A DNA stretch of 64,000 bases, taken from the NCBI GenBank assembly GCA_964188305.1, contig OZ076890.1. The stretch is one strand, 5' to 3'. Position numbers and translations under genes: made by a program. Of the stretch, positions 1 through 46,806 are shown piece after piece. The notes under the pieces were generated by a model. It had not been told where the DNA came from and ran no database searches. It saw nothing but the letters and a program-made list of their open reading frames with translations. Source of the DNA: Podarcis bocagei. Lineage: Eukaryota. Position 1 is the first letter of the stretch; the number at the start of each line of letters is the position of its first letter.

Positions 1-964
1 CTTTCCTCCCCCTATTGCAGCTGTAATTTACTTTACCAGAATGCCTGAATTAAAATGAATGCAGCTACAGCAAAAAAAAATCCGAGATTGACAGCAATTC
101 AGAAGCAACAACTTTATTCATAAAATTTAGACACTTGTTCCTTGTTAATCCTCCAAACACAACATCTGGATTTTAATCTTCAGGCTAAAAGGATCACAGA
201 TGTTTTGAGAGAGAGGGTAAAAACAACACAATATTTTGATAAATTAGAGAAATGGGCACGATGTTGCAGTTATTGTAGTTAAAACCCAGAAACGCATGGC
301 AAGAATGAAGCAACAAACACAGTTTGTGGAATGTTTGCCTAGGCATTTAATTAACAAAGTAGTACCTGGTGCCAAACATAAGTCAGGGACAAAATAGCAA
401 TGATTGCCTCTGAATCTGAACATCACTTACTGCAAAAGAAAAATTTTAAAAAATAAAATACTTTTAATCAGATCAAACCTTGCTTCAGATCTAGGCTTGA
501 TTACTTCTACTCCGGCCCAATTTGTATGTGGATTATAGTAGCATGTTGGGTTACCCTGTGAAAATTGAAGGGGATCCTGGAAAATCAGGGTTCAAGATAA
601 TGTGGGGAGCCTCCAGAAGTACAGGCTTCCCTGTTTTACCCTTTGAATCATGGAGGAACAAAAAGGGATGTAGGCAGAGCTAGTTCCCACCCTCCATCCC
701 ATCATGTGTTTGTTTAACTCAAAATATGAATGCTTGAATATGGCTTTTGGGAAACTGTCCAAGCAGAAAATTCTATTCTGAAGGCCCTTCTTCAAGTCCC
801 CTATCAATGGATGGACATTTGTAGTAGGACCTTCTTGCTTGTGGCATCTGAAATGTGGACTAGCCTCTTTAAGAACAACTAAGTCAGTTAGTTTGGTCAG
901 TTAGATAAGGTTAAGTTCAGCTGGTGGCTGTTGCACATATATGGATGTGGCTCTTAATGAAGTA

Positions 965-1483
965 GTTGGTTGTGGGCATCTGCTGTCTCGAAAGACAATG
1001 GAGTACGCTTCTGGAAGTAAAGTCAAACTGCTGCGTTAGCAGCACAGAAGTGACCTTCCCAGGGCACAAGCCTGGACAGTGTGTATGGAGGTCCTGGGCG
1101 GCCCAGAAAATGTGGTCTAAAGGAAAGCAGAGCAATATATTTGGCACCAGTTAGCCTTCAGGAGTTGCTGGAAAGAAGCATACAAAATACCATCCAAACA
1201 TTTTAGGGACTCCACTCCAGATTTATGTACAGTTTACTCCTTAGCCTTTTCTTTTCCTAAATATATATTGCAACGCAGCAAAGATTTAAGATCAGAGTTT
1301 TCCTTTCCCTAGATGGACTACCTTCCCAGGTTGACAAGCCCCATGTGCCCTTCACTTCCCTCTACAACAAGTGCAGAAACCACCTTCTTGACCATTGGAC
1401 TTACTACTGGTCTTGCCTGCTCATTCCACCAGTGCCTGTCTTCACATGCAGGGAAATCCCTCATTCACTGAGGATTTGAGACC
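965..1483 (-). mobile_element. Non-autonomous (bipartite) RTE-clade LINE derivative, 5'-truncated copy
   Basis: Collinear with 31548-32248. It shares its 3' tail (minus strand ...CAGCAGTTTGACTTTAC...CTCCATTGTCT...AGACAG...GATGCC) with the coding RTE 3' end at 8755-8985, but the sequence upstream of the tail is non-coding. Confidence 0.7.
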
Positions 1484-3354
1484 TCTAGATTGCATCTGGG
1501 ACTTATTGTAGATAGGCATGAAATAAACTGTGCAAATGTACTATGGGGTATTTTAAGGCTCCATATCCTTTATCTCCCTGATGTGAGGTAGCTGAGAAAA
1601 GAAAGAGGGAGAGGTTTGAGTTTAGCAAGAACTGACATATTCTCCAACATTTCTCCCAATGTCCCCTCTTGCTCCTCTACAGTACTGCAAATTCCCCCTT
1701 AAATGCCACCCACTTCCATCTGCTCCTGTCCTATTCTTCCTCTCTCCAGCTTTCTAGCCCTGGACACCAGAGCCAGCAAAGTGCCACCCATACCTGCATA
1801 CCTCCCTCCCTCCCATTTTCCTCCAAATTATACCTTCCCCCACTTCCCACCTACCTCTTCCCCAGTTCCTCTATTCTCTCTTCCCTCCCCACTTCCTTCA
1901 GTTACTAGAGACCTTTCTCCAAGGCCTTCCCCAAGTCATATACTACAGACACGACTCCTCTCTTTTTCTTCCATCCCCCTCTTCCTTCTTCCATCCCTGC
2001 TTTTAGAACCTTTGGAAACAGTTGATGAAAATAGAGTAATAATAGACTGCTGCACATAAAGGGATTGAAATAAATATACATTACTTAATTAATTAATTGA
2101 TTAAACAAACCCTGTTTTTTAAAGAGCAGCGCCCATTACAAATAGCTTCCAAAGCATCTTGGATATTTATTGCCAATTTCCCCCAGTCAAGGAACCAGTG
2201 ATAACCATGGATTTTTCTCATCCCTAGTTAAAGCCATTTAGAGCTAGATAAGACCTGATAGAATTTCTTTCTACCAAGACAGCAAATGAATAAGATGGAC
2301 ACAGAAATAAAGCTTGAGTGTCTGTGTGGAAATGATAGCAAGATAAACATCCTTAAATTTAGTTGAGAAGAGAATAACAGCACAGAAATTAGGCTGCCTG
2401 ACAATAAATGGATCAAAGAGCTGTATCATTGTAGAATATTCAGTGCCACACAAAGACTGAATCTTTTGTCATAAATTCTGAAGTAGATATAACATTGCAG
2501 AAATCATCATGGGGGGCGGGCAACATTTTATTTTAGGAGAGCTGACACCAAGCAATATATCCAAGCACAACTAAAACTTTGGCTCATGAACAGATACCGT
2601 ATAGGGATTTCTATAAATTGTGCTAAAACTGGGGTCTGAAAAATGGCGCTTAGGGGAACCACATGGTCTCAGACACTTCCCATGGTGCTTGCCAAGGCCT
2701 CTTGCCCCTCCTTTTTTAAAAACATTAAGGCACACAGATACCGTCACTCTCTTACTTTTTTTTTTGCCTCAGGGTGGTTTCTGGACCCCATGACAGATCC
2801 TGTTGTTTTAGGTCTAAACATAACCAGTTTTTCTTCTGTGAAATGGGTATTTTATAGGTGACAACAACGGTTTCCAATTGTATCCAATGTATCCATGTGC
2901 CTCCTGTGCTAAAGACTCCTGTGCTAGAGATTACTGATGATTTCTGTCACTAGGGGGCATGTCAGAAATCAAATGAATGTCACAATTATACAACTAAACA
3001 CACACACACGTATCCAGCACAAGTAAGACAACAGGTTCACTTATTCAGATATCAAATTAAACTAGAGTTGATATAAAAAGGAACTCAGAAGTCCTGGACC
3101 CTTGCTCCAATTTTCACACAGAATTATAAGTCAATGCTGCTGCAGAATGTTCCCTCTCATAACTGTTCCTATAATATTGAATGATGATCCTCCTTGGGAT
3201 AGTTTAGGGCTGATGCTGCTCCTGACTCAATGCAGATGCCCTCAGTGTGATTGCAGCCAGCTGTAGGGTAGTTCATACAGATCATTTGTTCATTGGATAA
3301 GCTGTCATCCCTGCTGTGTAGCGTACTTATGGAAAGGCTCAGTTTCACAAACAA

Positions 3355-3770
3355 ATGGGAAAATCTGTCCATTTCCCTCCAGTTTTCCCAGCCTTATGTT
3401 TGTGGCCTATTTCTGTATCTATATACATTAAAAAAACCAGAAAAACAAAAACAAACCAAAATAGTCTGTGCAAAAAAATAATGCGCATTTCCATGCACAT
3501 TTCTCATAACATACACATTTGGCTCACTATGCTTAATAAAACATTTAGAAATGTGTTATTTCCCCATACTTAGTGATTTTTCCACAGTACATTCACTAAT
3601 ACACACATTTTTGCACATTTCTTGGTTTGTGAACCACGTTGCAAGTTTTGGTGAAAAATTGACATATTTCGAAGGATAGCTTTGTTTTGGTTCATGTATC
3701 AGTTTGTGATATGTGAATTAGGTGGGCATTCTTTAAATTCAAATGGAAAAAGAAATCTCCACCATACCTA
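3355..3770. repeat. Old dispersed AT-rich repeat (AGGGATG...CATCCCT-ended MITE-like family), degraded copy
   Basis: Collinear similarity to the copies at 28095-28480, 40247-40668 and 45888-46931 (e.g. GTGAATTAGGT, TTTAAAT..AAA.GGAA, AATCTGT). Confidence 0.55.
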
Positions 3771-8985: not shown

Positions 8986-10868
8986 AATTATATCAATTAA
9001 ACTGTAATAAGATTATGAAGTCTTCTTCATACAATTTGGAATGATATATCAACAATATATATGAAGTGTCTCCAATTACACAAAATGCTTAACCCTACCA
9101 TGGATGCAGACCAATACCTTCAGCACCCACCATAGGGCAATAACAAAACAGCCACATTAGAAAAATTGCTTTGGTGAAGCCCAGTTCACCAGAACAATTG
9201 TGAATGCTTAGTTTTGCCATCCCATTGACAGGTGACTAATGTACATCCATAGCAAGGTGGGTTGGGGGGAGGGAAGGCTGGGCCTCCTTTTGCAGGGTGA
9301 GAGTGGAACAGAATGGAGAAGTTCTGATCTGCTCCAGAGCTGTAATTCCATGGATTTAGGTGACAGAACTAACTGGCCCAGAGGCAAGTCATAAGCTGTG
9401 GCCAAACAGTAAGCCAGAGCAGATGGATGCCTGAGGACTCCTGCTAAGCCAGGACCTGTATCTTGTATTCCTGCATCTTTCTCAATTATATAGCAAATAG
9501 AAGTAACCCAATATTTTCAAAGTCTCAAACATTCTTTATAATGTATGTTACAGTGACCACATGCTTTGACTGATTTTCCCACCCTTAAGGATCATTTTCT
9601 TTTGATTATCTGCAATGGTATCAAGTTTGTTTCATGATTCGCAGTATGGATTATCCTGTTTTTCATCTGCTTTTCTTTCTTTCTTTTTCAGTAAAGTCAT
9701 ATTCTATGTTAAATTACAGAAGTCACTCAACCAGATTAAATGTCACTATATCAGCCTCGGCGGTGGATCAATGCTGTAAAGGCATTCAACCTGATAACAT
9801 TAATCCTTCACTCTCTTTGGTATCATGAGTTTGATTTCCCAGTGAGAATTTGAACTTGCAAGAGATGGCAGTGATAGAAGTGTAAATCTCTACAGTAATG
9901 CCAGTGAAAATTTATTCTTAGTAGGTGGAATAAGAAATGGATTAGAGTGTATTCTTATGAATGGATCACCCCCTGGCTGGATTAATGTAGTGAATGGTAT
10001 TTTGGATGGTGATTGTGATTTTTGATATTTATTTATTTATTGTAAGGGAGATGGGTTTGCCGCATTTCGGCATCAGGAGATGGGAAGGGTGCTTGAGGAG
10101 TCTTAACATGGCAGCAGTTCAGATTTTTTTTTAAAAAAAATGAAACAAAAACAAAATGCAGAACAACAAGATGTTCTGCAGCAGCAACTATAGCTGCCAT
10201 ATCTATAGGTGTCATTTTCCAAAGGTATGTTTTCTTCTTCTTCATAGAATTCCTGCTGAGAGAAAGTTCCATGATGTCCAAAGGGGTTAGCCGCCTCTGA
10301 CGGCAACCCCAGCACTAGCACACAACCCTCAGACCACCTCAGTAATACTCTTAAATATATACTAATATTTTTTGTTTTGTTTTGGGGAGTTTTGAGGATT
10401 TTCTACTAAAAATCTACCTGGAAACAGGACAGGGAAGACTTAATTCCCTCCCCTCTGAGAACTGGGATGGACCAGATTTTAATGGACCTATCTATTCCTT
10501 CTGATACGCGAGTTGTGACTCATCTAAAGGGATTTGACCACGTGCTAGTTATTAGTGCTAGGAATGAACTAGTTTACTAAACCAAACTTTACTTAACTAG
10601 TTCAAAAATCTCTGAACTACACCTGAAAGTAGTTTTCATAATTGCTGAGTGAACAGAACATGAATTAAGTTCATTTTGGGGTAGAAAGCTGAATGATTTC
10701 TCTTCAAATTCATTTTCTTACAGATGTTTTTTTAAAAACACACACACACACTAAAACACTCCAGACTCTTTTAAGCTTACAGATCACAAGTGAAATGAAT
10801 CGAACAATTCACATTCCACTGGTTATGCGTTTTCATATTTTCTTAGACTTCAGAATAGCATATTGTAA

Positions 10869-11220
10869 GGGACATGGGTGGCACTGTGGGTTAAACCACA
10901 GAGCCTAGGGCTTGCCAATCAGAAATTCGATGGTTCAAATCCCCGCGAAGGGGTCAGCTTCCATTGCTCAGTCCCTGCTTCTACCAACCTAGCAGTTTGA
11001 AAGCACGTCAAAGTGCAAGTAGATAAATAGGTACCATTCCGGCAAGAAGGTAAAAGGCGTTTCCGTGCACTGCTCTGGTTCACCAGAAGTGGCTTAGTCA
11101 TGCTGGCCACATGACCTGGAAGCTGTACGCCAGCTCCCTCGGCTAATAAAGCGAGATGAGTGCCACAACCCCAGAGTCGTTAGCGACTGGACCTAATGGT
11201 CAGGGGTCCCTTTACCTTTA
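10869..11220 (+). mobile_element. Sauria SINE, full length
   Basis: tRNA-like head GGGACATGGGTGGCACTGTGGGTTAAACC...GGTTCAAATCCC, core AAGTGCAAGTAGATAAATAGGTACC, and (ACCTTT)n tail. Confidence 0.92.
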
Positions 11221-11941: not shown

Positions 11942-12411
11942 GTCACACTATAGAATTGCAGTTCACAGGAAACAAAGATGCTGTGTCTTGCATTATTTAT
12001 AAATAATGAACTATCATAATAAAACAGTATTAAGAAACAAAGAAAACACAGCAGAAGGAGAAATAACTGTTTTAGAGCAATTTAGGTTATCATGTTATTT
12101 TCCAAGCATATGAAATATTGAATACATTTCTACATTTCAGCAGTTCAGGCAAAGATTAATAATGCAGCTTTCTTGTTCTTCTTCCATGAAACGTATTTTT
12201 GGGGGCGTGTGACAGAAGTCTGCCTGTAAAATCAATGAGAAAATTATGGACTACTAAATAAAGGAACAACATCATGAATCTAATCACACAAAGGACCTTT
12301 GTTTATGCATTTAAAACTATCTACTTGGTGGGATGTCTTTATGCAGATGTCTCTGGTGCCTAAATAGCAGGCAGGGTGGTAAGAAAGTGGTAAGAAACTG
12401 AAAGATATATA

Positions 12412-12653
12412 CAATGGTACCTCGGGTTAAGAACTCAATTCGTTCTGGAGGTCCGTTCTTAGCCTGAAACTGTTCTTAACCTGAGGTACCACTTTAGCTA
12501 ATGGGGCTACCTGCTGCCAACGCGCCGCCACCACACAATTTCTGTTCTCATCCTGAAGCAAAGTTCTTAACTTGAGGTACTATTCCTGGGTTAGTGGAGT
12601 CTGTAAGCTGAAGCCTCTGCAACCTGAAGCGTCTGTAACCCGAGGTACCACTG
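12412..12653. mobile_element. Tc1/mariner (Tigger/pogo-like) MITE
   Basis: TIRs CA(A/G)TGGTACCTCGGGTTA / TAACCCGAGGTACCACTG with TA on both flanks; no coding capacity. Confidence 0.88.
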
Positions 12654-14804
12654 TAATCCATTCTTCACTCCAGCCCCCAAATACTGGGGAAAGCAATAAC
12701 ATCCCAGGGAACAATTGTGCATCATGTACCCTTCCTTCATGTCATTACTGGTAATGGAGGGTAATTGACTGGTTGCCTTAGTCCTGTAGAAGTGAAGTCA
12801 TTCAGGGAAGTGCTAGAAAGAGAGTCAGCTTTTCTCACACACACATCCTTGAGCTCTTATTCCTGTATAAATTCGATTGATGCAAAAGCATGGTCGATAA
12901 GCAAGGAATTGTGGTTTCAGTGTTTCTCCCCCAACTCCTTGCTCTGTCCCTCAAGTTTTTCATTTGCTGTTTTGCCCTGGAACCAAAGTTGTTTGCAGAA
13001 GAAAAACTCTGCAGTGTCCAGCACCTTTGTGAGCCAGGGGAAAATTTGGACTGATTGACTACAAGGTTTTGCAAACAAGATTTGCAAGAGTTACATATTT
13101 CTCTTTGGACCAAGAGGAAGTGCTGTTGGTCCTTGAATTAAACAAAATACTTATTCATTTTGCTCTGTGAGTATCCGTTGTTCTCATGTTGTGCTTCCCA
13201 TTGTTTCCCCTTGTTCATTTCAAATCTCTGTAAATTTTATTCCAAGTAAACCCTGTATCACCCATGCAGACAAAGGTCTTGATCTTTAGCAGCTGGCAGA
13301 GAGGAAGTGAGAAACAAGGGAATGCTAAGTGGAAACACTCTTGGAAGTTATTGTCTCATCTTAAAAGCTATATGGACATAGTGCTAACCTCTCTGGAATC
13401 CCTTTACCTTTTAGTTTGTTGAGGCCTACTTAAATTTCCACAGCCAAATTTTCCATGTAGGTGAAGTGGTCATTTGTGGCAAGAGGTTCAGAAGTTTAGC
13501 GGGGACAGTTGTTTGACAGACTTGAATCAGCAGAAAGGGGCTCAGCACTCCTTCTGTTTATGCTGAGTGGAATGTCATATATCATTCAATGTGTATATCA
13601 TCCTCTAAGGAGCCTGACATGGACTGTGATTAACTTATACACCTGATCATATATGCAGATTCTTACTATACAAGACCATACAGTAAAATAAAACTGAAAT
13701 ACAGTGATATATATTAGTTTTGGCAGGTGGCTGGTGTTTTAATGTAGATTACTTGAATTAGAAACGTTCTAAAATTATGGGGAGTGTTAAATTTGCAGCT
13801 TGGGGCTGAGGTGACTGTCTGAAGAGAAGACAATTAGAATTGTTACTCAGGTTCCACTGAGATGAACTGGAAGTTAATGGGACCATGACAAGATTCTATC
13901 TGCCTGGTCTTGGAATAAGCCCATTTCCTGAACTTTCTGTGGAGCAATTAACAGGGCTGCACAGATTACACAGCCTGAGAATCTGTTCCATAATGTCAAA
14001 AAATGTGAAAGGTGTCACATCATGAAAGAAACAAACAGAGGTCAGTCTGTTCATTGATTAGATAACCTGAACTCTACACTAGAACCTTTAATGGTAGTAT
14101 AGACCTTGCTCTTTTGTTCCCAATTATATTCATTGGCTTCAGAAAGATCTTGACTTGTTCTTTCTGCTTCACAACCACTTAATAATGTGCAGTAAAAGTT
14201 CTGTTGACAATTCATATAAAGCAATTATAAACCTGACAAAACATCCCTAACAGGTTCATGAGGTCAAAATAAAAAAAAGCCAAGTGGTATATCATGTCTG
14301 ATTTTCTGGTAATGAGTACAGTATTTACTAAGGAATGGACACAAGCACATTTTACCACTTTCACCAAGGGAACCTTTTCTTCATATAAATTATTAGCTTC
14401 TGTCAGTAGCTTATAAGCATTGCTTAATGGTCAATAATATATCCTGGATTTTTTTAAAAAAGAAAAGACCTCACAAAATCAAAGTTCAATTATACACATT
14501 TTTGTATGTATTTCCTCCTTAAAATAAACATTTTGTATGATTTTCCCACTTTTTAAAAAAAAATCGACACCGAACTTAAAAAAATCAAAATATCCAAATA
14601 ATAACTGCATTCTAATATATGAATCATAGAGTTGTAGAGTTGTAAGAGATCCCAAGGATCATGTAATCCAATCCCCTACTTAAAATTACAGATCAAACAG
14701 GATTATACTTCATATAAGTATAAGCTAGCTATGAAACTGCAATAAAGTGTTTTGGTATTTTTTACATTTTTGTAACCACAAAGTCAAAATTAGAAATGTA
14801 CAGG

Positions 14805-14862: not shown

Positions 14863-15944
14863 CTGTGTTGGGAGGAGGCACTAGAAGAGGAGGGTGTCAC
14901 TAGGACTTGGGATGGAGACTTCAAGCACAGGGAACTTGATCACCTAGCCCATTCTGCCACCTCTCTTCATGCCCCACACCTGATGTCACATATGACATCA
15001 CATATTTGGTCCAGAACAATGATTTGCAGCACAATCCTAAACATGTTTACTATGATGTAATCTCACCAACAATGGAACTCACTCCCTAGTAAGTTTTTTT
15101 TGTTTTTGTTTTTGTTTTTAGGATGTCAGTCATTAACAGGAAGGTGTGTGACTAACTAGTGAGTAAAAGTAATTCCAACACAGCATGTGTTGTAACCAAA
15201 TCTCTATTTTAAATAGTGCTAAGACTGTCATTGCATTGAATCAGAATGGGACTGACTCTATATCAAACTTTATATTCAAAATAATATCTTGCATACACAA
15301 ACATACAAACTACTTCTAATTATTGGCTAATAATTTATTGGTTGTCTTTATTTTTATTTTATTTTTCAGCAAAAGTTTGGGTTTTTCTTCTTTGACAAGT
15401 TGTTGGTATCTGTATTGTTTTTGAAGCTATGTGGATGCACCTTTTTCATATCATATTTTGTCTATTATTTTCAGCTGCTTAATCTTTCTAAGATTCATTT
15501 TCCCCCTTCCATTGACACCTCTCATCCTTTAATTCACCCTTTGGTTTTTTATCTCAACTGGATTATTGAAATTCTTTGCTTCTTGGTTTGTCCTTATCTC
15601 ATCTAAGGCCTCTTTCTACTTGCATTTTATTCTATTGCTACTTTTAGATTCCATTCCATAATATTGATCATCTCTCTCCATTGCTGTTTTCTCTCATTGA
15701 TTACCTTATCCCGTCTGTATACAGTACAACAATTTATTAACTTTTTGGTACATCTATTCCATAGCTCCCTCGTATCTTTCTTCCCTGACTTCAATTTATT
15801 GTCCTCCTCAATCTCTTCATTTTTCTTTCTAAACCATGGTTACTTTTAATCTCATTTGGTTTTCTCTCTCTCTTTGTACTGTTTTACCTTGTCCTTTTTC
15901 TTTTTCTTTTTGTTTCAAACACACTGTTTGATATTTCTTCATTT

Positions 15945-16270
15945 AGACGCTTTTTAAACAGCTTAATTATATCAGCTAGAAGGAGTTCCACAAATTGGAT
16001 CTACAATACTGAGTGCAAAGCTCCTGGTGGTTATGAGCCACACATCCTAGTCAAAGGCAACAACTAACAGTGACTCCCGAAAGACCTCAGTGATCAGGCA
16101 GGAATATAAGGAGTCAGGTGTTCCTGACCCAATCCTGGACCCAATTTGGTAAGGGCCTTGTACATTAATACAAGAAAATTGAGCCAGTCTCAGTAGTAAA
16201 TAGTACAAGCTTTCAGCCAGCAGAATTACATGCTGGTGATAGTTTGCTCCCTCAACTGTCTTGCAGCAGA
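15945..16270 (-). mobile_element. Old L2 LINE fragment
   Basis: GGAGTTCCACA, AAGACCTCAGTGATCAGGCAGG and AGGGCCTTGTACATTAATACAAG resemble the antisense L2 ORF2 C-terminal region also seen at 35795-36780. Confidence 0.5.
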
Positions 16271-17783
16271 AGGTGCCTTGTATAGGCTGAAGGTTTAAAC
16301 TAGACCTGCAAAATCAGGTCTGCACCAAGTCCATATAAGCTCTCAAGCGGGTCTGTGTATTTGTGTGTGGCAATGTAGCTGGCAGAAATGAGGATCTGAA
16401 AACCTCAGCTATATGCCCTCAGCTGCATTTTAGCCATTTTTCCTTCAGTTAAGCACCATGTCTGCAAGTAAGCCCCACCAGGATAAAGTAGCTTGAGTTG
16501 GAGAAGTATACATGTGTATGGTGGGATGGCAACAAATCAGCTCTTCTTTCCTGCTTGCCCATGCTGTATTTTGTCACTCTTACTCCTCTCTATAGGGAAT
16601 AGACAGGCCAGAAGGACACAAATAAGGTCTTCCATCACATCTAAATTTCCTCCTAAGAGTTCATTCCTGCATAAAATCTTGTTTTATTTCTGTGGCTAGT
16701 TCTGCCACCCTACATTGCATGCATGCTCAGGATATCTGCCTGGAAAAACAGGTGTGAGCTTCTCACACTGGAGGTCAGAATCATTTTTATGTATCACACA
16801 CATCTGCAACTGGCCTAACTGCATATAAGCAGGTACATCTAGCTGTCCTTTATCAATAGATCCAATGACAATATGAAATCTGCTCCGTGTTCCGTGTTAC
16901 TTGCAATGTGGATGTGGCACTGAAAGTGGACAGCAATGGATATCCACAGCATCCATGCTATTGTTTCAAAAGAAATATGTTTTATGATATTTTCTTAGCA
17001 AGTAGATTAGATAAGGTTCTGTGAATTGTCTCCACAGTCACACAAGAGCCTGTCTTATGAATGTTTGAGCTACTTGGTTGTATATGCTGATTTTAATGAC
17101 CATAATGGGCCCCACTGTCATCTTCAGAGAAAATAATACATGATTTAAAAGTCTCTCCCAAGAGCACACTGCTTATTCAATACACCACAAAAAGCTCTAA
17201 TAATCTGCATTTTTAGAAGATGCTAAATTGTGAGATGAAATCCAGAATTTTATAAACAGCTAGAGGGGTTATTTGTATAATACCAGACTGCAATGCTTGC
17301 TTTTGAAAGCAATGCTGTTAATGTACAGATACAGATATAAATCTAATATATATATATATTGTTAATTAAAATTGTTTCAACCTCAGTTCTTTTGTATACA
17401 TGGTCTATATACTAACATGAAATGTTTGGGCTTGATAGTTTAAGAAAATTACTTCCACGATGGTATACCAAAAAAACCACAGTATGTTCAATGGGATTAA
17501 GTTTTAAATGCGGAAAATCTGTTCCTTATATATTGTCAAAGAAACCTAATTAGGTGAACTTTTAATACTGGGAAATGAATTTGGCCTTTAGTTAAGAATC
17601 AGTGAGTCACAAAAGGTGCTTGGCTAGTTTAATGCTTAAGAGGTTCATGCTTAATTAATACAACATGAATCAAAATGTTCAGCCATGCCTGAATTTTGCA
17701 AATTTGCAGCCAGTGAACTATTAGAAGCTGGGGTAGGAGGGGATAAATGTTAAGAAGTAACTAGGAGGATAATTCTCTAGCAC

Positions 17784-17784
17784 C

Positions 17785-17821
<37 letters not shown>
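17784..17821. repeat. (CTGT)n microsatellite
   Basis: Direct inspection. Confidence 0.95.
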
Positions 17822-19321
17822 TTATTCTGAGCTCAATAATATGGTTAATTAGAAGAATGCCTAACAATCTGTCCTCCCTGTCCTAAGACGAACCAACATT
17901 AATTCATCCTCTGCCACCTCCCAGCAGAGGAAGAGCTCCAAGCTAGCACACTTTTAAGGTCATTCTTAAACCTTAGGCGTCACACATTAATTACATGAAG
18001 AACAGAGGGACTGTGCAGCTGTGCTTTTGGCTATACCCCTGTGGCCTATGGTTTCTCTACCCTTGCTCCCCAACCTATGTGTTAGGTTGCCCAATTGTAG
18101 TGATACTTTTATGTGGAATCTTTCTGCTAAGAGGAAATACAAGAAGGCTTCCTTGACTCAGACACCCATGTTAATTCATGATTGACAGGGTTAGGGTGAG
18201 ACCAAAAAAGGTCACCTGACTACTCACTTTTCCTATTTGCATGAGTAATGTGTGGCAAGACTTTCAATGGTCATATTATCTATCCATACACATCACACTT
18301 CAGAAAGTCTCTCATGTGCATCTCTCCTCTAGCTATTTCCCCTCCCCTAAGCAAATGCTCCTACAAAGTTTGTGATTCTCTCAAACCAGCCATCAATTCT
18401 GCTGAAGGACTAGGTATCATTATGATTGTGCCACATGCAACTGATTGCTAGCAGGATTGTTGCAAGTTTTCAGGGCGAGTTCTAGGAAGCCCTGGGCACA
18501 ATGGCATCCAGTGAGCCCCTTCCTATGTTACCGGGCCCTGGTGGGTTTACCTGGTATTGGTGATCTGAACAGCACCTAGCTGTTGGAGGGAAGGAGAAGC
18601 AAATAATTATTTGAACTTCTCACAATTTCCCAAAGTGATGCCATGTTGGTTACATGGTGGAAAATTAAAATGGAAAGTAAGTCCATCTGTCAGGTTTTAC
18701 ATAGAGTGCCAGACCAGATGATGATGATGATGATTTATTTAGAGGGGGCAGAGATCAGCAGTGGGCTCTGTTAAGAGCTGTTCAAGGGTGGAATGGCTGG
18801 GTGCTAGTCACTTCGTTTGGTAAGAGCTGTTGCACGGGTGATCAAATGTTTTCAGTAAAATGTCTTCTAAAGTCCACTTAGAAGCCATAGGTCAATAATG
18901 AAAAGCTATGTAGTGTACACATCTTTTGTAGGATGTGACTTCACAAAATTGTGGGATCTGCTTCATTTCATTTCTATGGCAACAGGCATTTCCTCAATTT
19001 CTTCCATTTCTGCTTAACCAAAATCTAAGTAAGGGTGCAGTCTGATGAAAAGGAACAGAATTTAAGAGAGGCACACCTCACCAGAAGAAGACTTCTGCTG
19101 GAACCCAGCCCTCCACTGTTTGCTAGCAATAAGAAAACTCATCCTGTGGGTGGTTTGAGGTCACTAGGCCTATTTACCTTCATTGAAAAGTGGAATTGTT
19201 GACATAGTCTTTTTCTGCCAGGGATAATTAACTTCCCATAACCCCAACCATAAAATTATGCTGAAAATTTTCACCAGGAGACATGTGGGGTTGTAGTGCA
19301 TACACATCTCTTGCTACTAAC

Positions 19322-19793
19322 TGTTAGTATCTCAGCTCACAGGCAGAGGTACCTGGCCTCCCCCAAGGCAATTAAGCTGGATACTTGATGACCTCTCCGC
19401 TGCGTCTCCCGGCAGGCTAGGTCATAACTCCGGCGATTCTCCTCATCAATCAGACGTGAAGAACACACCCTCCGCTACTCTGCTTCTCTCCCCCTCCCTG
19501 CATTCTCCCAGGGAGGAGAAATGAGACAGACAGGAGTCCTTTCTACATGTTTATTCCTGTCACTCAACAGTACATAGAATTGCATCTGTTCCCTTCAGAC
19601 TCCATCAGAAGAGACTCACACTCCTCCCCTGTACTTCCAGCACAGGTCACATGACACTCTGAGCTAACATCTGGTGCTCAGTACAGAGAATAGGCTCCAC
19701 CTTTTCCCCAGCAGTACAGCAGCAAACCACAACATCCTGTTTTGCATTCCAGCAATCTGGAGCTGGCTTTTGCATTGGTGCTTTTTCCCAACA
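19322..19793 (-). repeat. 3' LTR of the copia element
   Basis: Direct repeat of 22903-23374, with 5 transitions and no indels by manual alignment. Minus-strand AATAAA at 19550-19555; E-box/M-box GTCATGTGAC at 19646-19655. Confidence 0.96.
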
Positions 19794-22316
19794 TCCTCCC
19801 CCAAAAGCATCAATTGGCAAAACATGATCCAGAGAAGAGAACAAACAGTTGTTATACATATAACAGTCCCCTGTTGTTTCAGTTCCACCCTTGGAACTCC
19901 CCACCACTAGTTTCACCAATGTACCTCTCTGGTTGTCTGGCTTCCAAGGAATGAGTGCTTCTGCATTACCTTGGTTAGCTACTCTCTGTTGTGTCTTTGT
20001 CTCTGACTTAGACACTGCTTTAACCTGCTTTGAGTTGTTAACAATAGCAACACATGCAACAGCTAAGTTAGCAAACTCTTTTGAGTACCTCTTTGGTGGT
20101 ACACCCTTTGTAACTCTCTCAGACCTGCGTATGAGGTTCTGATCCTCTGTGCTCACTGGTTCAACCTTTGGACTCTGTTGAGAACCAGTAGCAATGGCTA
20201 ACAGTGGTTCTTCCTTCATCTGTGAAGGTCTATCCATTGTGTGAGATTTTCTCTCAATGACTGTTACAACTGAACTCTCTGAGCTATCAGTGTCATCATC
20301 ATCAGTACCACTGTAATCTGTGACATCAGAAAAATCATCATCATCATCTGAATTGCCACCTGTGGGAAATGTGTGTTCTCCTACCCGCTCTTGTTCGGGA
20401 GCACTCTCTAGAAACTTTGTGAGAATCACCTGACCAGATTCAGACAAAATTACTCTGTAGAGACCCTTTTCATAACCCACAAAAATGCCTCTGGCATTCT
20501 TTACTCCACCTGGAGCTTCTGTTCTCACATGAGACCCGAAAACCTTAAAGTAGGCTACAGAAGGTTTTCTATTGAACAGCTTCTCAAAAGGAGAACATCC
20601 CAACTCTGTTGAGACTTTTCTCAACCACACATGAAGATAGGACGCTAGCGATTCGGCCCAATATTCATGTGGCAAATGTGAACTCAGCAATTGCGCATGC
20701 ATCCCCTTTTGCAATTCTTTGTTCACTCTCACACAGACCCCCCTGTTCCACGCTTCGGTCGAAACAGCAATTTTGTGATCTATCCCTTTTCCATCCAGGA
20801 ACTTCTGAAACTTCTGTAACAGAAAAATTTGCTTCTCATCTGTGAAAAGACAATCAATGTTAGCATCATGCATACTCTTAACCTTGTCACAAAACTCCTG
20901 AAACTTTTCTAAAGTTTCTTGCGGTTTCTCCATCAAATAAACCCAAGAATAATTAGTGAAACAATCCACACACAAAAGGTAATATTTTGCACTGCCCCTA
21001 GATGGTTCTAGAGCACCAATCACATCAGCATACACCCGCTGAAATGCTTTGTCGACTTTCGGCACCTTCCGGGCGCTCGTTTTGGTCACACCTGCAAGAG
21101 AGATTACGTTAGAATCAGAAGAATTGCATTTCATGTAATCACTTTGATCAAAAGTCAACAAATACAGTCCATCTTTCTCTTTGGCAGTAAGAAACAGTTC
21201 TCCATCTTTGTAGATCTTGCAGCTTTTAGCATCATAGGACAGTTTCAGTCCTTTCTTTGCAATCTGCGACACGCTCAGCAGATTAAATCTCAGTTCCGGA
21301 ACCAGGTAAACATCGCTTATAGTCAAGTTCAGACTCTCAAGATTCACAGTCCCAATTCCGGTTGCTTCCAGCTCTTGACCATTGGCCTGTTTCACAGTGA
21401 AGCTTTGCTTCTTCAACGTCGAAAACAGTCCTCTGTGCGGGCATAAATGTTTTGTGCATCCCGTGTCGATTATGAAGGCGTTCCCAACATCTGGCGTGGT
21501 TCCTTTCGCCATCATAGCCTTTGCAGGTTTCACCTGGTACTTGGTACGGCTTTTGCCTGACGCCTCAGGCTTCGTAGAGCTGCTCTTCGCTCCTCTTGAC
21601 TGGCGCGGCTTCTTACAGTTTCGCTGTAGATGCCCAATCTGTCCACAATTATAGCATTGGACAGCACTCAATGCTGTAGCATGCTCTGCAGTAGCATCAG
21701 CAGTGGGAAGATTTGAACTCTGTTCTACCCTCCCCCTGCCCTTCACTTCCAGTGCAGCAAGTCTGTCGTGTTCGTTCAGGACGACGGCACACACTCTTTC
21801 CGCGGTTAGGTCCTGAGCCGGTAGGGAACCAAGCTGACTGGCAACAACCTTGTAGGTGCGATTAAGGCTGTTTATCATCATGAAGCAAAACACTTCCTCC
21901 TGAAGACGGAAATTGCGCTCCACCATCTGTTGACGCAGAAACTTCATCTCTGTCAGGTGCGCTTGGACATCACCATCAGGCGCTAGTCTCAGATTGGTCA
22001 ACTTCTCAAAATACAGCAACGCTGAAGAACCAGCATCTCTCTGATGCGTTGTACGCAGCGTATCCCAAACCTCTTTCGCGTTTTCTAAATACTGGATATG
22101 CACCAATTGCGCGTCTGAGATACACAGTATTATAGCAGTCCTGGCCCTCACGTTCTGTGATTCCCAACCTCTGGTTGGTGCTGCAGGGATGGGGTTTTCA
22201 ATTACATCAAACAGCCTCTGATTCTGCAGCAGGGCCTTCATCTTTACAGACCAAGATGAATAATTGTCATTATTTAGGGGAGGTGGGCAAGGCAGAGCTC
22301 CCTTCTTGGCATCCAT
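19647..22316 (-). CDS. Copia Gag-protease-(degenerate integrase) polyprotein, 889 aa
   Basis: First ATG at 22316 in strong Kozak context (AAGATGG); the ORF track start at 22490 is a TTG. Copia gag N-terminus LNNDNYSSWSVKMKALL; zinc knuckle CYNCGQIGHLQRNC (21615-21656); aspartic protease FIIDTGCTKH (Asp 21465-21467) with NLLSVSQI; integrase core RVYADVIG / YYLLCVDCFTNYSWVYLM / FTDEK / WAES / FKVFGS..GIFVGY; RRSER motif. No YVDD-type RT motif. Confidence 0.93.
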   Translation of the reverse strand: MDAKKGALPCPPPLNNDNYSSWSVKMKALLQNQRLFDVIENPIPAAPTRGWESQNVRARTAIILCISDAQLVHIQYLENAKEVWDTLRTTHQRDAGSSALLYFEKLTNLRLAPDGDVQAHLTEMKFLRQQMVERNFRLQEEVFCFMMINSLNRTYKVVASQLGSLPAQDLTAERVCAVVLNEHDRLAALEVKGRGRVEQSSNLPTADATAEHATALSAVQCYNCGQIGHLQRNCKKPRQSRGAKSSSTKPEASGKSRTKYQVKPAKAMMAKGTTPDVGNAFIIDTGCTKHLCPHRGLFSTLKKQSFTVKQANGQELEATGIGTVNLESLNLTISDVYLVPELRFNLLSVSQIAKKGLKLSYDAKSCKIYKDGELFLTAKEKDGLYLLTFDQSDYMKCNSSDSNVISLAGVTKTSARKVPKVDKAFQRVYADVIGALEPSRGSAKYYLLCVDCFTNYSWVYLMEKPQETLEKFQEFCDKVKSMHDANIDCLFTDEKQIFLLQKFQKFLDGKGIDHKIAVSTEAWNRGVCVRVNKELQKGMHAQLLSSHLPHEYWAESLASYLHVWLRKVSTELGCSPFEKLFNRKPSVAYFKVFGSHVRTEAPGGVKNARGIFVGYEKGLYRVILSESGQVILTKFLESAPEQERVGEHTFPTGGNSDDDDDFSDVTDYSGTDDDDTDSSESSVVTVIERKSHTMDRPSQMKEEPLLAIATGSQQSPKVEPVSTEDQNLIRRSERVTKGVPPKRYSKEFANLAVACVAIVNNSKQVKAVSKSETKTQQRVANQGNAEALIPWKPDNQRGTLVKLVVGSSKGGTETTGDCYMYNNCLFSSLDHVLPIDAFGGGCWEKAPMQKPAPDCWNAKQDVVVCCCTAGEKVEPILCTEHQMLAQSVM
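19794..19802 (-). other. Polypurine tract (PPT)
   Basis: Minus strand GGGGGAGGA directly abuts the TG of the 3' LTR. Confidence 0.9.
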
Positions 22317-22870
22317 CTTGAAGCCAAGCCTCCAGCTCACACTGTCAAGCAAGCTGTAAAATCCAACAGTCGTTTCCTGCCTTTCTCTTTGCAGGCAAAC
22401 TGCAAGTTGTTTATGCTCTTTGCACCTGGCAGCAAAACGCTGGCTGCTACAGAAAGTCCCTTTCCAAGAGCACGTAAAGCTTGTAGCCAAAACACTCTAT
22501 GGCTTAGTTTCGCTTTCCCAGCCTCACAATGCAGCTGCGTAGCCAGTAACTTTCCACTATCGTTACTTAGCAAGAGTGCATTCAGGACTTCTTATCTTAA
22601 CCACAGGAATTTGTGGAATGCAGGCTTCAGCTTCCAAGCTGCAGGCCTTTTCTCCCGGAGCTTTTGTTTTTCAAACGCAGAGCTCCCGTGAACCAGGGAA
22701 TTAATCAACCTGCGTTCACACTTTTAGCCCAAAATGCAGCAGCATACCTTGATCTCCGTTGCTTGGAAAACACCTTCCTCTGGGTCTGTTCAGCCTCTGG
22801 CTTCTGTCAGACACTTGCCTTCTCCCTTGGAGCAGAGGAGGACATTCCACCAGCCTCTCATGCAGATGTC

Positions 22871-22900
22871 CGATGAATCGCAACCATCCGAAGGCTGCCA
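22871..22900 (-). other. Primer-binding site, split and extended, complementary to initiator tRNA-Met
   Basis: Begins 2 nt after the 5' LTR: TGGCAGC-CTTC-GGATGGTTGCGATTCATCG, versus the complement of the vertebrate tRNA-iMet 3' end TGGTAGC-AGA-GGATGGTTTCGATCCATCG. Confidence 0.85.
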
Positions 22901-22902
22901 TA

Positions 22903-23374
22903 TGTTAGTATCTCAGCTCACAGGCAGAGGTACCTGGCCTCCCCCGAGGCAATTAAGCTGGATACTTGATGACCTCTCCGCTGCGTCTCCCGGCAGGCTA
23001 GGTCATAACTCCGGCGATTCTCCTCATCAATCAGACGTGAAGAACACACCCTCCGCTACTCTGCTTCCCTCTCCCTCCCTGCATTCTCCCAGGGAGGAGA
23101 AATGAGACAGACAGGAGTCCTTTCTACATGTTTATTCCTGTCACTCAACAGTACATAGAATTGCACCTGTTCCCTTCAGACTCCATCAGAAGAGACTCAC
23201 ACTCCTCCCCTGTACTTCCAGCACAGGTCACATGACACTCTGAGCTAACATCCGGTGCTCAGTACAGAGAATAGGCTCCACCTTTTCCCCAGCAGTACAG
23301 CAGCAAACCACAACATCCTGTTTTGCATTCCAGCAATCTGGAGCTGGCTTTTGCATTGGTGCTTTTTCCCAACA
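22903..23374 (-). repeat. 5' LTR of the copia element
   Basis: TGTTGGG...CTAACA on the minus strand; CCAAT, TGTGGTTT (RUNX-like), GTCATGTGAC (23227-23236) and AATAAA (23131-23136); no clear TATA box. Confidence 0.96.
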
Positions 23375-24835
23375 CTAACATCTAAGATACATCTAAGAAA
23401 TGAGACTGGTTTTCTGCACAGTGTTTGTACTGAAGAAAAAAGTAGCAAATTAGGGGCTGGAATAAAGGCAGCAGAAGAGACCTGAAGGTTTTTGTTTCTA
23501 GTTTGAAAACGGTTTTATAAACATGAGGGGTGTGGGTGTCTCAAGGCACACTGTTTTCATTGGGGAACTGGTTCATAGAACAACACAGTCTGATTTGCCA
23601 TGCTCAATGTGTACATTTATAAATAAACAAAGGGAACATAAGTCACCAATGCTGTCTGTTATCGCAAAGAAACAGATCCTGTAAAGAGGCCAACCGTAGA
23701 ACTTTCTAACACTTGGGAATAGGGAACCTCCCTGCTTTGTGTAAGACTATTGCAACCTTACTTTTCACAGCTGTTGAAAACTTGGGAGACATGGACTGCA
23801 AGCCGACTGATTGTCTTTGGTTGAAATTATACCTTTCTAGTGGAGAGTTGTACATTAGGAAGTGGACAGAGCTCACTTAGTTAATGGAGCACTGGAGTTT
23901 TCGAGTAAACGAAACTAATGAATCCCTGTAGTGCTGGCAGGGCTAGTCACTGGCCCAATAACAGGTGGCTAATTGGCCCAGCTGGGACCAAATATGGGCA
24001 ATGTTAGCTAGTTGGCAAAGGAGCTGCATAAATCTGCACTGATGGCTCTGGAGAGAGACAAAGTTCTAGGGGAGGGGGAAGTTAGCCTGAAGGGCAACCT
24101 GGGGAATTGAAGGGGATTCAATTTGCTTCTTAGAGTTAAAAGTTGTTTTTAAGATATGGTTGACTGTTCATATCTTATATGATATGAAATTAAATATTTT
24201 ACATTGTTAAACTTTGTTTTAGCAGTAAACTGAAAACTTAAGATGAAGTATCTGGATCTTCTAATGGACTTGGCTGATTATTATTTTCTAGCTTTTGTTC
24301 CTTGCTCTGGTCTAGAGGTTCTCTGTTATGAATGATGAAGGTTTTAGTCTGATAATCACCTCCTCATACAATCAGAAATTCCTGCTGCTTCTATATTTCT
24401 GCTAAATCTAATCACCTGTGAGCTAGAAAGGCTGAGGAGAGATGTTTGACAGTCCTTCCCTCCTCTCCCCTGGAAGACAAGCTTCACCAATTTGCAGCCT
24501 TTTCTTCCCACACGAGGCTTGCAACTGGGACTTGGTTTCCAGCCTTTGGGTTGCAATGTGATTGTAAAACCAAAGTTGGCCCAAATGCCTGTTCATAATT
24601 GTAAATGTCTCCTTTTAACAACAAATCCGATGTTGACATACATAAATTACAAGAGAGAGGCTCAAAGGCAATTCGAGCCTCATGCATGAGTATACAGCTC
24701 ACAGGAGAGGAAAGAGATTTTGTTTTTTAGCAGTTGTGGGGAAAGCTCACAAATGTTAGTGTAACTGTGCAAGGGAAGTGGGGTTGCCTTTAACTACACT
24801 GAAATTATTCTAATGCTTCTGCTTCCAGATGGTTC

Positions 24836-24842
<7 letters not shown>

Positions 24843-24896
<54 letters not shown>

Positions 24897-30160: not shown

Positions 30161-30536
30161 TAAAAGGTAAAGGTGAAGGGACCCCTGACCATTAGGTCTA
30201 GTCGTGACCGACTCTGGGGTTGCGGTGCTCATCTCGCTTTATTGGCCGAGGGAGCTGGCGTACAGCTTCCGGGTCATGTGGCCAGCATGACTAAGCCGCT
30301 TCTGGTGAACCAGAGCAGCGCACGGAAACGCCGTTTACCTTCCCGCCAGAACGGTACCTGTTTATCTACTTGCACTTTGATGTGCTTTCGAACTGCTAGG
30401 TTGGCAGGAGCTGGGACCAAGCAACGGGAGCTCACCCTGTTGCGGGGATTCGAATCGCCGACCTTCTGATCAGCAAGTCCTAGGCTCTGTGGTTTAACCC
30501 ACAGTGCCACCTGTGGTTTAACCCTCTGCGCCACCC
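30161..30536 (-). mobile_element. Sauria SINE with 11-bp TSD
   Basis: Reverse complement of 10869-11220; TSD ATGGCATTTGG at 30150-30160 and 30537-30547. Confidence 0.93.
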
Positions 30537-43962: not shown

Positions 43963-44501
43963 TTGGACTACGGCAATGTGCTCTATGTGGGGCTACCTTT
44001 GAAGCTGACCTGGAAACTACAACTAATCCAGAATGCAGCTGCTAGCCTGGTGACTGGGAGCGGCTGCCGAGACCACATAACACTGTTCTTGAAAGATTTA
44101 CATTGGCTTCCAGTACATTTCTGAGCTGACCTTTAAAGCTCTAAATGGCCTCGGTCCAGTATACCTGAAGGAGCGTCTCCACCCCCATCATTCTACCCGG
44201 ACACTGAGGTCCAGCACCGAGGGCCTTCTGGCGGTTCCCTCACTGCGAGAAGCCAAGTTACAGGGAACCAGGCAGAGGGCCTTCTCGGTAGTGGCACCTG
44301 CCCTGTGGAAAACCCTCCCACCAGATGTCAAAGAGAAAACAACTACCAGACTTTTAGAAGACAACTGAAGGCAGCCCTGTTTAGGGAAGCTTTTAATGTT
44401 TGACAGACTACTGTATTTTAATATTTTGTTGGAAGCCACCCAGAGTGGCTGGAGAAACCCAGCCAGATGGGCGGGGTATAAATAATAAATGATGATGATG
44501 A
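43963..44501 (+). mobile_element. L2 LINE 3' end
   Basis: Translates LDYGNVLYVGLPLKLTWKLQLIQNAAASLVTG...HITLFLKDLHWLPV, followed by an L2 3' UTR ending GATGGGCGGGGTATAAATAATAAAT. Confidence 0.9.
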
Positions 44502-45166
44502 TACTTTGTTTTAGGAGACTTGTGAACTTGATTAATCTGGGGGACTTTAACTGAGGGTGCTTTTCTGAAGCACAATATTTAGTAAAGTGTTTTCTAGAAG
44601 CATTCGTTGAACATTTTGGAAGTTAAATTGAAGCTGCAAATATGGTAATGTAGTTTATACATATAGAAATCTATGTCTATATATCAATTGCCCAAACCAT
44701 AAATAGTCAAGGTAACTGTACAGATGATTTATCAAAACCAGCCAGAAGCAGAAGTAGTAATAGCAAGAAATACATGGTGAGCCAGTTATCCAAAAGAACA
44801 TGAAATTATATTTCCTTGCCTTGCTGTGCATTTATCTTGGGTTAATGAGAACTTTGTTTTTGTCTTGTTTGTTATATCTACATGAAGCACAGCTGGGTTT
44901 CCGCCAATAAGTTATTACTCTGACAGCACAGGCCTAGGCATGTTTACTCAGAAGTAAGCCCCACTGAGCTCAATTGGATGTACTGCCTAGTTAGTAATGT
45001 ATGCAGACAGATGTCCCTCATTAATCCTGACAAACTGCCATCTTGAGTGATAAATGTAGGTGTATTCCACACCCTCTCCTACACAGCTTTGCTCTCTAGC
45101 AGTTTCACCTTCCCTGCTTGCTCTTTTCACAGTCTTCTTGTTCCAAGTATCATATACACATGAGGC

Positions 45167-46159: not shown

Positions 46160-46806
46160 CAGAAGTGTGAACACATAGGCAGAGCCAATCCACTCTTGGC
46201 CATCTGTTTCCGCTGCATCAACCTTTCTGCCACCTCACCCCTAGTAAACAGCAGTCACTCAGCTGGTGGCAGGTCAGGTCCACTACTAATTAGGACAGCG
46301 GTTCTCAACCTGTGGGTCCCCAGATGTTGTTGAACTACAATTCCCATCACCCCTAGCTAGCAAGGCCAGAGCTCAGGGATGATGGGAGTTGTAGTCCAAC
46401 AACATTAACATCTGGGAACCCACAGGTTGAGAACCGCTGGATTAGGAGAATGACTGCTCCCCACATCAAATGGGGTGTGTACTTTGCATGGACGCGCGCA
46501 GCACCCCTGATCCTACACAGCTCCTAGCATTATTGCCTGGCATCGCCCCCCCAGGCTGGATTCCTGGAGGTTCCCGCCCAACCTTGGACAGTCAACCAAT
46601 CCTGGTGGGGGAGGTATTGCCAGGGGAGTTGGCCAGGTAGGGGGTGGGACTTCCCTACCCACACAATAGAGAGTGGCCCAAGGCCTAAGCCAAGGTCTCC
46701 CTACACCTGAATCTTAAATAAAGTTGTGGTCAATTTTAATCCCATAACACAGTGTCGCGTGTCTTTATTCCACACGGGGGGGGGGGGTCTCCGCCTGTCT
46801 GCGCAA
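46160..46806 (+). mobile_element. Unclassified GC-richer element ending AATAAAGTTGTGG...GTGTC.CGTGT.TTTATTC...TGCGCAA (possibly DIRS/Ngaro-derived)
   Basis: Inserted into the surrounding repeat; 3' motif series shared with 50901-51260. The family assignment comes from memory of similar ends and is unverified. Confidence 0.5.
46296..46439. mobile_element. hAT MITE with 8-bp TSD
   Basis: TIR CAGCGGTTCTCAACCTGTGGGT / ACCCACAGGTTGAGAACCGCTG; TSD AATTAGGA / GATTAGGA. Confidence 0.92.

Follow-up and report, generated by a model that had tools for sequence, protein, structure and literature searches.

A recently inserted Ty1/copia element without reverse transcriptase, and the probably old non-autonomous lacertid lineage to which it belongs

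The 64-kb stretch of the Podarcis bocagei genome analysed here (contig OZ076890.1 of assembly GCA_964188305.1; hereafter, the window) contains a copia-type long terminal repeat (LTR) element of 4053 bp, with exact boundaries at 19322–23374 on the minus strand, that has no reverse transcriptase (RT) and has an integrase devoid of its catalytic glutamate. This element probably inserted recently and belongs to a Ty1/copia lineage of lacertids that is old and non-autonomous ("semi-autonomous"), and that would express its own polyprotein and be mobilised in trans. The lineage was read from the window and three genomic loci, two in Podarcis lilfordi (L001 and L002A) and one in Zootoca vivipara (L003). 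The RT-less architecture is common to diverged copies in these two genera. The lineage has also transposed recently, because the two LTRs of a copy are 98.9% identical in the window, 99.6% in L001 and 100% in L003. A first-pass annotation of the window, made from the sequence alone, had proposed that it belongs to a non-autonomous lineage of long standing, kept by selection for the expression of Gag and protease and dependent on a helper for RT and integrase; the diverged copies, their common clade and the substitution patterns described below all support that proposal.

The polyprotein is encoded by a single open reading frame (ORF) of 889 codons plus stop (19647–22316, minus strand; ATG to last codon, 19650–22316), which, as first reported, has neither internal stops nor frameshifts. 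It is the sole long ORF of the 64 kb; the next, and the only other one of at least 150 aa, encodes 150 aa (48911–49363, minus strand). That the ORF has stayed open since insertion is unremarkable, because only about 14 substitutions are expected in it at about 1% LTR divergence; its openness on arrival is what counts. Pfam searches detected Retrotran_gag_2 (E 4e-22), DUF4219, zf-CCHC and Pol_BBD (E 1e-20, the protease, with its DTG motif), as well as weak matches to rve (E 0.022) and SH3; RVT_2 and gag_pre-integrase were absent from the Pfam results on this ORF. The Pfam matches, the collinear alignment and the placement in a copia tree agree that copia-type Gag and protease precede the integrase. 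The Gag region (DUF4219 and Retrotran_gag_2, aa 14–186; 21759–22277), the CCHC zinc knuckle of the nucleocapsid (aa 220–236, C-X2-C-X4-H-X4-C; 21609–21659; Pfam and alignment) and the aspartic protease (Pol_BBD, aa 281–356, DTG at 284–286; 21249–21476; Pfam and alignment), all on the minus strand like the other coding features given here, are intact and collinear with those of RT-bearing copia polyproteins.

The integrase that follows is altered in two respects, both pointed out in the first-pass annotation. Alignment with full-length copia polyproteins reveals that the HHCC zinc-binding region is absent, and a short, unrelated filler (aa 391–425; 21042–21146) takes its place. In the catalytic core (aa 426–585; 20562–21041; alignment and predicted structure), D431 and D493 are retained with the 35-residue spacing intact, the catalytic Glu is replaced by Val529, and the DNGGE motif is lost. 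The core is followed by a C-terminal SH3-like domain (aa 586–640; 20397–20561; Pfam and predicted structure) and by an acidic Asp/Ser-rich linker that is predicted to be disordered (aa 641–728; 20133–20396; alignment and predicted structure). AlphaFold2 models aa 424–643 as integrase core plus SH3 domain with a predicted local distance difference test score (pLDDT) above 90, and the linker and tail with low confidence. Foldseek matched the predicted integrase to retroviral integrase structures, both cores and two-domain forms, including those of foamy virus and Rous sarcoma virus (E 1e-14 to 1e-11; target-normalised template-modelling score up to 0.84).

The last part of the ORF that is collinear with a full copia element ahead of the RT deletion is the pre-RT linker (RRSERVTKGVPPKRY..., aa 729–786; 19959–20132), which is 58% identical to the RT-bearing element L002B of P. 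lilfordi over aa 702–744. No RT was found past this linker in the ORF tail, either by BLASTP against 25 copia proteins or with a purpose-built copia RT/RNase H profile, so that the absence of RT noted at first holds. The RNase H vestige that had also been noted was recovered as a trace of 19 residues (aa 811–829, GTETTGDCYMYNNCLFSSL; 19830–19886), which matches the RNase H region of L002B at 68% identity (E 5e-6, with a small, targeted set as the search space), collinear in position and with its motif kept in Zootoca; the RT/RNase H profile detects no RNase H. LTR-encoded residues that MAFFT aligned with an RT motif (KPAPDCWN versus KQSPKCWN) are a chance match, since E is 1.0 and the sequence lies in U3. 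Judged by its coding content, the element can neither reverse-transcribe nor integrate unaided; the 5-bp target duplication of the window copy is of the copia-integrase type and was not self-made.

The termini carry the Ty1/copia hallmarks, LTR ends TG..CA and a 5-bp target-site duplication. The 5' LTR (472 bp, TGTTGG...CTAACA, AATAAA at LTR position 239; 22903–23374, minus strand) is preceded by the upstream duplication copy GTTAG (23375–23379), at the end of the flank ...GATGTTAG. The 3' LTR (472 bp; 19322–19793) holds the C-terminal 48 codons of the ORF together with its stop (19647–19793) and is followed in the flank by the downstream GTTAG (19317–19321). The pair differs at 5 of 472 positions, all transitions, in accordance with the first count, and two of these lie at CpG sites, where the 3' LTR has undergone CpG to TpG/CpA changes (each LTR has 7–9 CpG). 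The corresponding divergence (K = 0.0106) translates into an age of a few million years only under commonly assumed squamate rates. The polypurine tract GGGGGAGGA (19794–19802) adjoins the 3' LTR and recurs in L002A and in a further RT-less element, L004. A sequence resembling a primer-binding site (PBS), TGGCAGCCTTCGGATGG (22884–22900), begins with TGG 2 nt past the 5' LTR. Thus, the target duplication and polypurine tract listed in the first-pass annotation are as described there, and the PBS departs from that of its own family: it is about five positions off TGGTAGCAGAG, common to the three other copies, whose extended form TGGTAGCAGAG(GATGG) we take to be complementary to the 3' end of vertebrate initiator tRNA-Met. 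The leader or 5' untranslated region (22317–22883) begins next to this aberrant PBS with a stretch almost identical to the leader of L001.

L001 (P. lilfordi OX395127.1, 8140–12179) is a collinear RT-less copy, 84% identical to the window element in nucleotide sequence over its whole length and 91.5% in the coding part, with LTRs of 458 bp that differ at two positions and are 3582 bp apart, as compared with 3581 bp in the window. Its 3' LTR is 11 nt short and adjoins a fragment of another copy of the family (L001:12184–12567). This fragment comprises the integrase C-terminus and acidic linker and has 94% identity with the element beside it; annotation has fused parts of both into one chimeric protein, P0026. 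L002A (P. lilfordi OX395145.1, approximately 14958–18375) is an older copy with LTRs about 95% identical, a truncated 5' LTR, and one frameshift and one stop in its coding region. It is collinear with the window ORF up to aa 842, at about 57% amino acid identity and about 70% nucleotide identity. L003 (Z. vivipara OY735905.1) lies within a FAM168A intron and has an intact single-exon ORF of 869 aa between identical LTRs, which shares 43% identity with aa 10–838 of the window ORF and equals it in domain content. Some 45 nt of PBS and leader are repeated past its 3' LTR, and there is no clean duplication. The HHCC region is missing and the catalytic Glu is Val in all four copies (window, L001, L002A and L003), and the Zootoca copy lacks the first Asp as well.

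Protein searches added gene models of Podarcis lilfordi and Podarcis muralis that derive from related copies (P0001, P0002, P0026, P0027 and P0028). The Glu-to-Val integrase is present in P0001, P0026, P0027 and P0028, and P0002 consists of Gag/protease exons of the family only. RT-less copia ORFs evidently enter annotation as host genes by mistake, which is of practical importance: XP_060129920.1, "FAM168A isoform X1", is the intronic 869-aa ORF of the Zootoca element (L003:10001–12610), and the Podarcis models P0001 and P0002, "vomeronasal type-2 receptor 26-like", are partly or wholly copia exons.

In a tree of 30 sequences built from the Gag-protease-integrase region (IQ-TREE, LG+C20 with posterior mean site frequencies, quick search; disrupted copies were translated across their breaks, each marked by an X, here and in the substitution analysis), the four dead-integrase copies are monophyletic, with a support of 100 in the Shimodaira-Hasegawa-like approximate likelihood-ratio test (SH-aLRT). 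They fall in a strongly supported clade of lizard copia elements together with two RT-bearing elements of the P. lilfordi genome, L005 and L002B, and with a family from the Logan collection (P0030/L004). L004 is a unitig of ERR14657514 (positions 1–3766) that is circularised, with identical 30-nt ends and a period of 3736 bp. Like the dead-integrase copies, this family is RT-less and has the same linker and polypurine tract; in contrast to them, the integrase of its 845-aa Gag-protease-integrase ORF keeps HHCC and DDE intact. The ORF ends just past the common RRSER..PPKR..EFA linker, about 280 nt before GGGGGAGGA, and the PBS region, TGGCGGTGCTACCCAGC, differs from that of the dead-integrase family. 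P0030 pairs weakly with L002B (SH-aLRT 80), and a single RT-less clade is not rejected (approximately unbiased test, p 0.225), so that this topology is consistent with one or two losses of RT across the dead-integrase lineage and the P0030 family. A clade of all RT-less proteins was seen only in a tree from which L005 and L002B were absent; the pairing changed once these had been added. L004 may represent an earlier step, in which RT alone was lost.

The ratio of nonsynonymous to synonymous substitution rates (dN/dS) between the window and L001 (Nei-Gojobori; 95% confidence intervals in brackets) is 0.30 (0.21–0.41) for the whole ORF, not the value of about 1 that the first-pass annotation had named as contradicting its proposal. 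By region it is 0.13 (0.06–0.24) for Gag, 0.16 (0.03–0.40) for the protease, 0.38 (0.15–1.10) for the integrase core, 0 for the SH3 domain (no nonsynonymous and six synonymous changes) and 0.37 (0.20–0.72) for the tail (aa 729–836). The filler in place of HHCC (about 1.0; 0.24–4.66) and the LTR-encoded C-terminus (about 1.07; 0.28–4.50) serve as internal neutral controls. Of the ten coding indels between the two copies, seven preserve the reading frame, and the remainder are three losses of a single base in the L001 gag. Deeper comparisons yield ratios of nonsynonymous to synonymous proportions (pN/pS) of 0.34–0.65 in every domain, and for the dead integrase core 0.36 (0.25–0.49) against L002A and 0.44 (0.33–0.54) against Zootoca. 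Together, these comparisons of coding sequence show purifying selection on the polyprotein, dead integrase and tail not excepted.

An alternative explanation of the low dN/dS values is that the ORF is dispensable and helper proteins do everything, the ratio being lowered by repeated recombination with an autonomous partner or by constraint at the RNA level. L001 apparently was mobilised with three frameshifts in gag, or else gained them very fast, and the uneven synonymous divergence among domains (dS 0.07–0.27) could hint at mosaicism. However, the constrained Val529 integrase and RT-less tail are specific to this lineage and could not have been supplied by an autonomous partner, and the closest database proteins include no autonomous element whose Gag or protease is similar: across 15 billion proteins, searched as 1.84 billion cluster representatives, the closest RT-bearing ones are at most about 32% identical. 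In addition, in-frame indels dominate, the gap between synonymous and nonsynonymous change is a protein-level signal, and the frameshifts may be assembly errors of the kind suspected in L005, from the same assembly. We therefore regard a dispensable ORF as unlikely, although it is the strongest of the competing explanations.

Constraint could also reflect a function that benefits the host or restricts other elements, such as interference by Gag or a dead integrase in the manner of Fv1 or Ty1 p22. A folded, dead and constrained integrase would suit a dominant-negative action, and in Zootoca the copy has been given a protein-coding gene annotation. That "gene", however, is a single-exon ORF that sits in an intron, flanked by identical LTRs. 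All characterised copies bear LTRs and lie at unrelated loci, unlike a domesticated gene, which would be single-copy and LTR-less; their LTRs are in part very young and one copy has a target duplication. The lineage is therefore mobile and multi-copy and not a fixed single-copy gene. Since interference with helpers and parasitism of helpers can coexist, some restricting effect would be compatible with trans-mobilisation, and as an explanation in its own right a host function appears quite improbable.

Candidate helpers for mobilisation in trans are the co-resident copia families represented in P. lilfordi by L005 and L002B. L005 (7509–12456) and L002B (L002:20420–25298) carry HHCC, DDE, RT and RNase H, features that set them apart from the RT-less family, with which they have in common the wider clade, domain order, TGT...CCAACA LTR termini and 5-bp duplications. 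L005 has identical 376-bp LTRs, the target duplication AAGTG and a cluster of some three frameshifts within the integrase core; the LTRs of L002B are 96% identical and its target duplication is GGCAC. The existence of such young RT-bearing copia elements with the same LTR termini in the same genome argues against mobilisation without any copia helper, that is, by an unrelated RT and integrase-independent insertion. The window copy speaks against it as well, because its 5-bp duplication is clean and its TG..CA ends are intact, the signature of Ty1/copia integrase. On the other side, a cognate helper did not turn up, and a retrotransposition pathway that does without integrase is reported for yeast (cited in PMC13570524). 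On balance, we give this route very little credence.

The least tenable explanation, effectively ruled out, is that the window element is a one-off decayed copy of an ordinary autonomous copia, produced by a deletion after insertion or by collapse of the assembly: a priori, an LTR element without RT is in most cases a dead copy, and an ORF still open at 1% LTR divergence is compatible with chance, but the same architecture, lost zinc finger and Glu-to-Val change recur at three other loci (L001, L002A and L003) in two assemblies and two genera, the LTR spacing of the window and L001 differs by a single base pair, the ORF is constrained, and a near-identical RT-bearing sister, which the first-pass annotation had tied to this explanation, did not appear in the database search above.

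Several observations weigh against trans-mobilisation of a polyprotein-expressing lineage as we have proposed it. The L005- and L002B-type families are no more than candidate helpers. Their Gag is only 23–33% identical to that of the element, no nucleotide similarity to it was found in either of them, LTR and leader included, and the sampled copies are both broken as assembled. Their PBS is of another type than that of the RT-less family, and resembles what is presumably the complement of the anticodon stem of initiator tRNA-Met, as in Drosophila copia. The window copy itself may no longer be mobile, because its PBS is aberrant. The gag of L001 is broken by three 1-bp deletions in spite of its nearly identical LTRs; if these deletions are real, copies with broken Gag are still mobilised, which weakens a strict requirement in cis. 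They may instead be assembly errors, and L005, in the same assembly, likewise has clustered frameshifts between identical LTRs. Finally, the pN/pS values of the deeper comparisons come from protein-guided alignments with saturated synonymous sites and are conservative only in sign.

With these reservations, the semi-autonomous life cycle would run as follows. The lineage has lost RT, nearly all of RNase H and the integrase zinc finger, and has Val in the position of the catalytic integrase Glu. A single polyprotein would be expressed, comprising Gag, the zinc knuckle, a protease that looks active, a folded integrase devoid of catalytic activity, and the tail. The element RNA would be packaged by its own Gag and processed by its own protease, and RT/RNase H and active integrase would be supplied in trans by co-resident RT-bearing copia elements. 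The element would thus make particles of its own, as the first-pass annotation had suggested. The dead integrase, acidic linker and tail would have a non-catalytic role, most likely as a handle that draws helper Pol into the particles of the parasite or works within them, and possibly in nuclear import too. Such a role as adaptor for helper Pol is plausible by analogy, because the RT activity of Ty1 requires the integrase C-terminal region and integrases oligomerise. A more far-reaching version, which we put forward tentatively and consider possible but not the likelier outcome, is that of a vertebrate "capsid-bringing" hyperparasite that makes its own particles, captures the Pol (RT, RNase H and integrase) of distant autonomous copia elements by means of the dead integrase and acidic tail, and in this way outlasts individual helper families and switches between them across lacertid genera.

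Neither further copies or solo LTRs of the element nor tRNA genes or Rfam families were found within the 64-kb window. Local G+C content is 0.45–0.47 at 19322–24000, compared with about 0.38–0.40 in the flanks, and perfect microsatellites lie on both sides, (CTGT)9.5 at 17784–17821 and (TC)18.5 at 24843–24879. Interspersed repeats occupy 10866–11220 and 30164–30511 (in opposite orientations), 12408–12655, 43963–44502 and 46296–46439. They are about 130–590 bp long, 75–97% identical to sequences scattered across Podarcis and Zootoca loci and without an Rfam match, and are probably short interspersed element (SINE)-like or other lacertid repeats, in keeping with the lacertid source of the window.

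Non-autonomous LTR elements are usually seen as short-lived deletion derivatives that need a near-identical partner. In contrast, the lizard lineage spans at least two genera, with protein identity down to 43%, has remained constrained over its whole polyprotein and was inserting until recently. This opens the way to tests, in a vertebrate, of how remote in relationship two LTR elements can be and still complement each other in trans, of what an integrase fold contributes non-catalytically to particle assembly or reverse transcription, and of whether the parasitism of one element on another has a part in shaping the retroelement communities of squamates, which are unusually diverse.

Semi-autonomous LTR elements are already known as a concept. 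Among vertebrates, mouse ETn/MusD and deleted intracisternal A-particle (IAP) elements are LTR elements without coding capacity that are mobilised in trans; these are derived from retroviruses and close to their helpers in sequence, and we know of no conserved dead integrase in them. Gag-retaining non-autonomous elements of plants, to which the first-pass annotation had appealed, are indeed documented, as are those that retain Gag and protease (PMC4350172, PMC13570524). The TR-GAG elements are LTR-bounded, retain Gag in an open frame, are devoid of RT and are presumed to be trans-mobilised, and for TR-GAG1 no full-length partner was found (PMC4350172). The lizard element resembles them in its size of about 4 kb or less, its LTRs, its open Gag and its lack of RT. 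Unlike these Gag-only plant elements, it adds a constrained protease and integrase fold, in a vertebrate, and so falls outside the TR-GAG definition of a Gag-only ORF. In sugar beet, 28 families retain Gag/protease, and 24 of the 43 domain-carrying families have no traceable partner (PMC13570524). These, too, keep Gag and protease or a partly decayed Pol, often with an untraceable partner, and have been mobile recently, but the remnants there are patchy and decayed, whereas the lizard lineage has an uninterrupted ORF across genera and constraint on an inactivated domain. BARE-2 and BARE-1 of barley are, in the account given in PMC4350172, a parasite-helper copia pair in which BARE-2 has no Gag and borrows it from its closely similar partner; the roles are reversed in the lizard lineage, which keeps Gag but not RT and has no partner of similar sequence. 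TARE1 of tomato, considered as a possible analogue, proved not to be one. Full-text literature searches returned neither an element of Gag-protease-integrase type without RT nor anything comparable from reptiles, and no description from a vertebrate was found. What appears to be new, then, is the vertebrate host, the persistence across genera and the measured constraint on an inactivated integrase.

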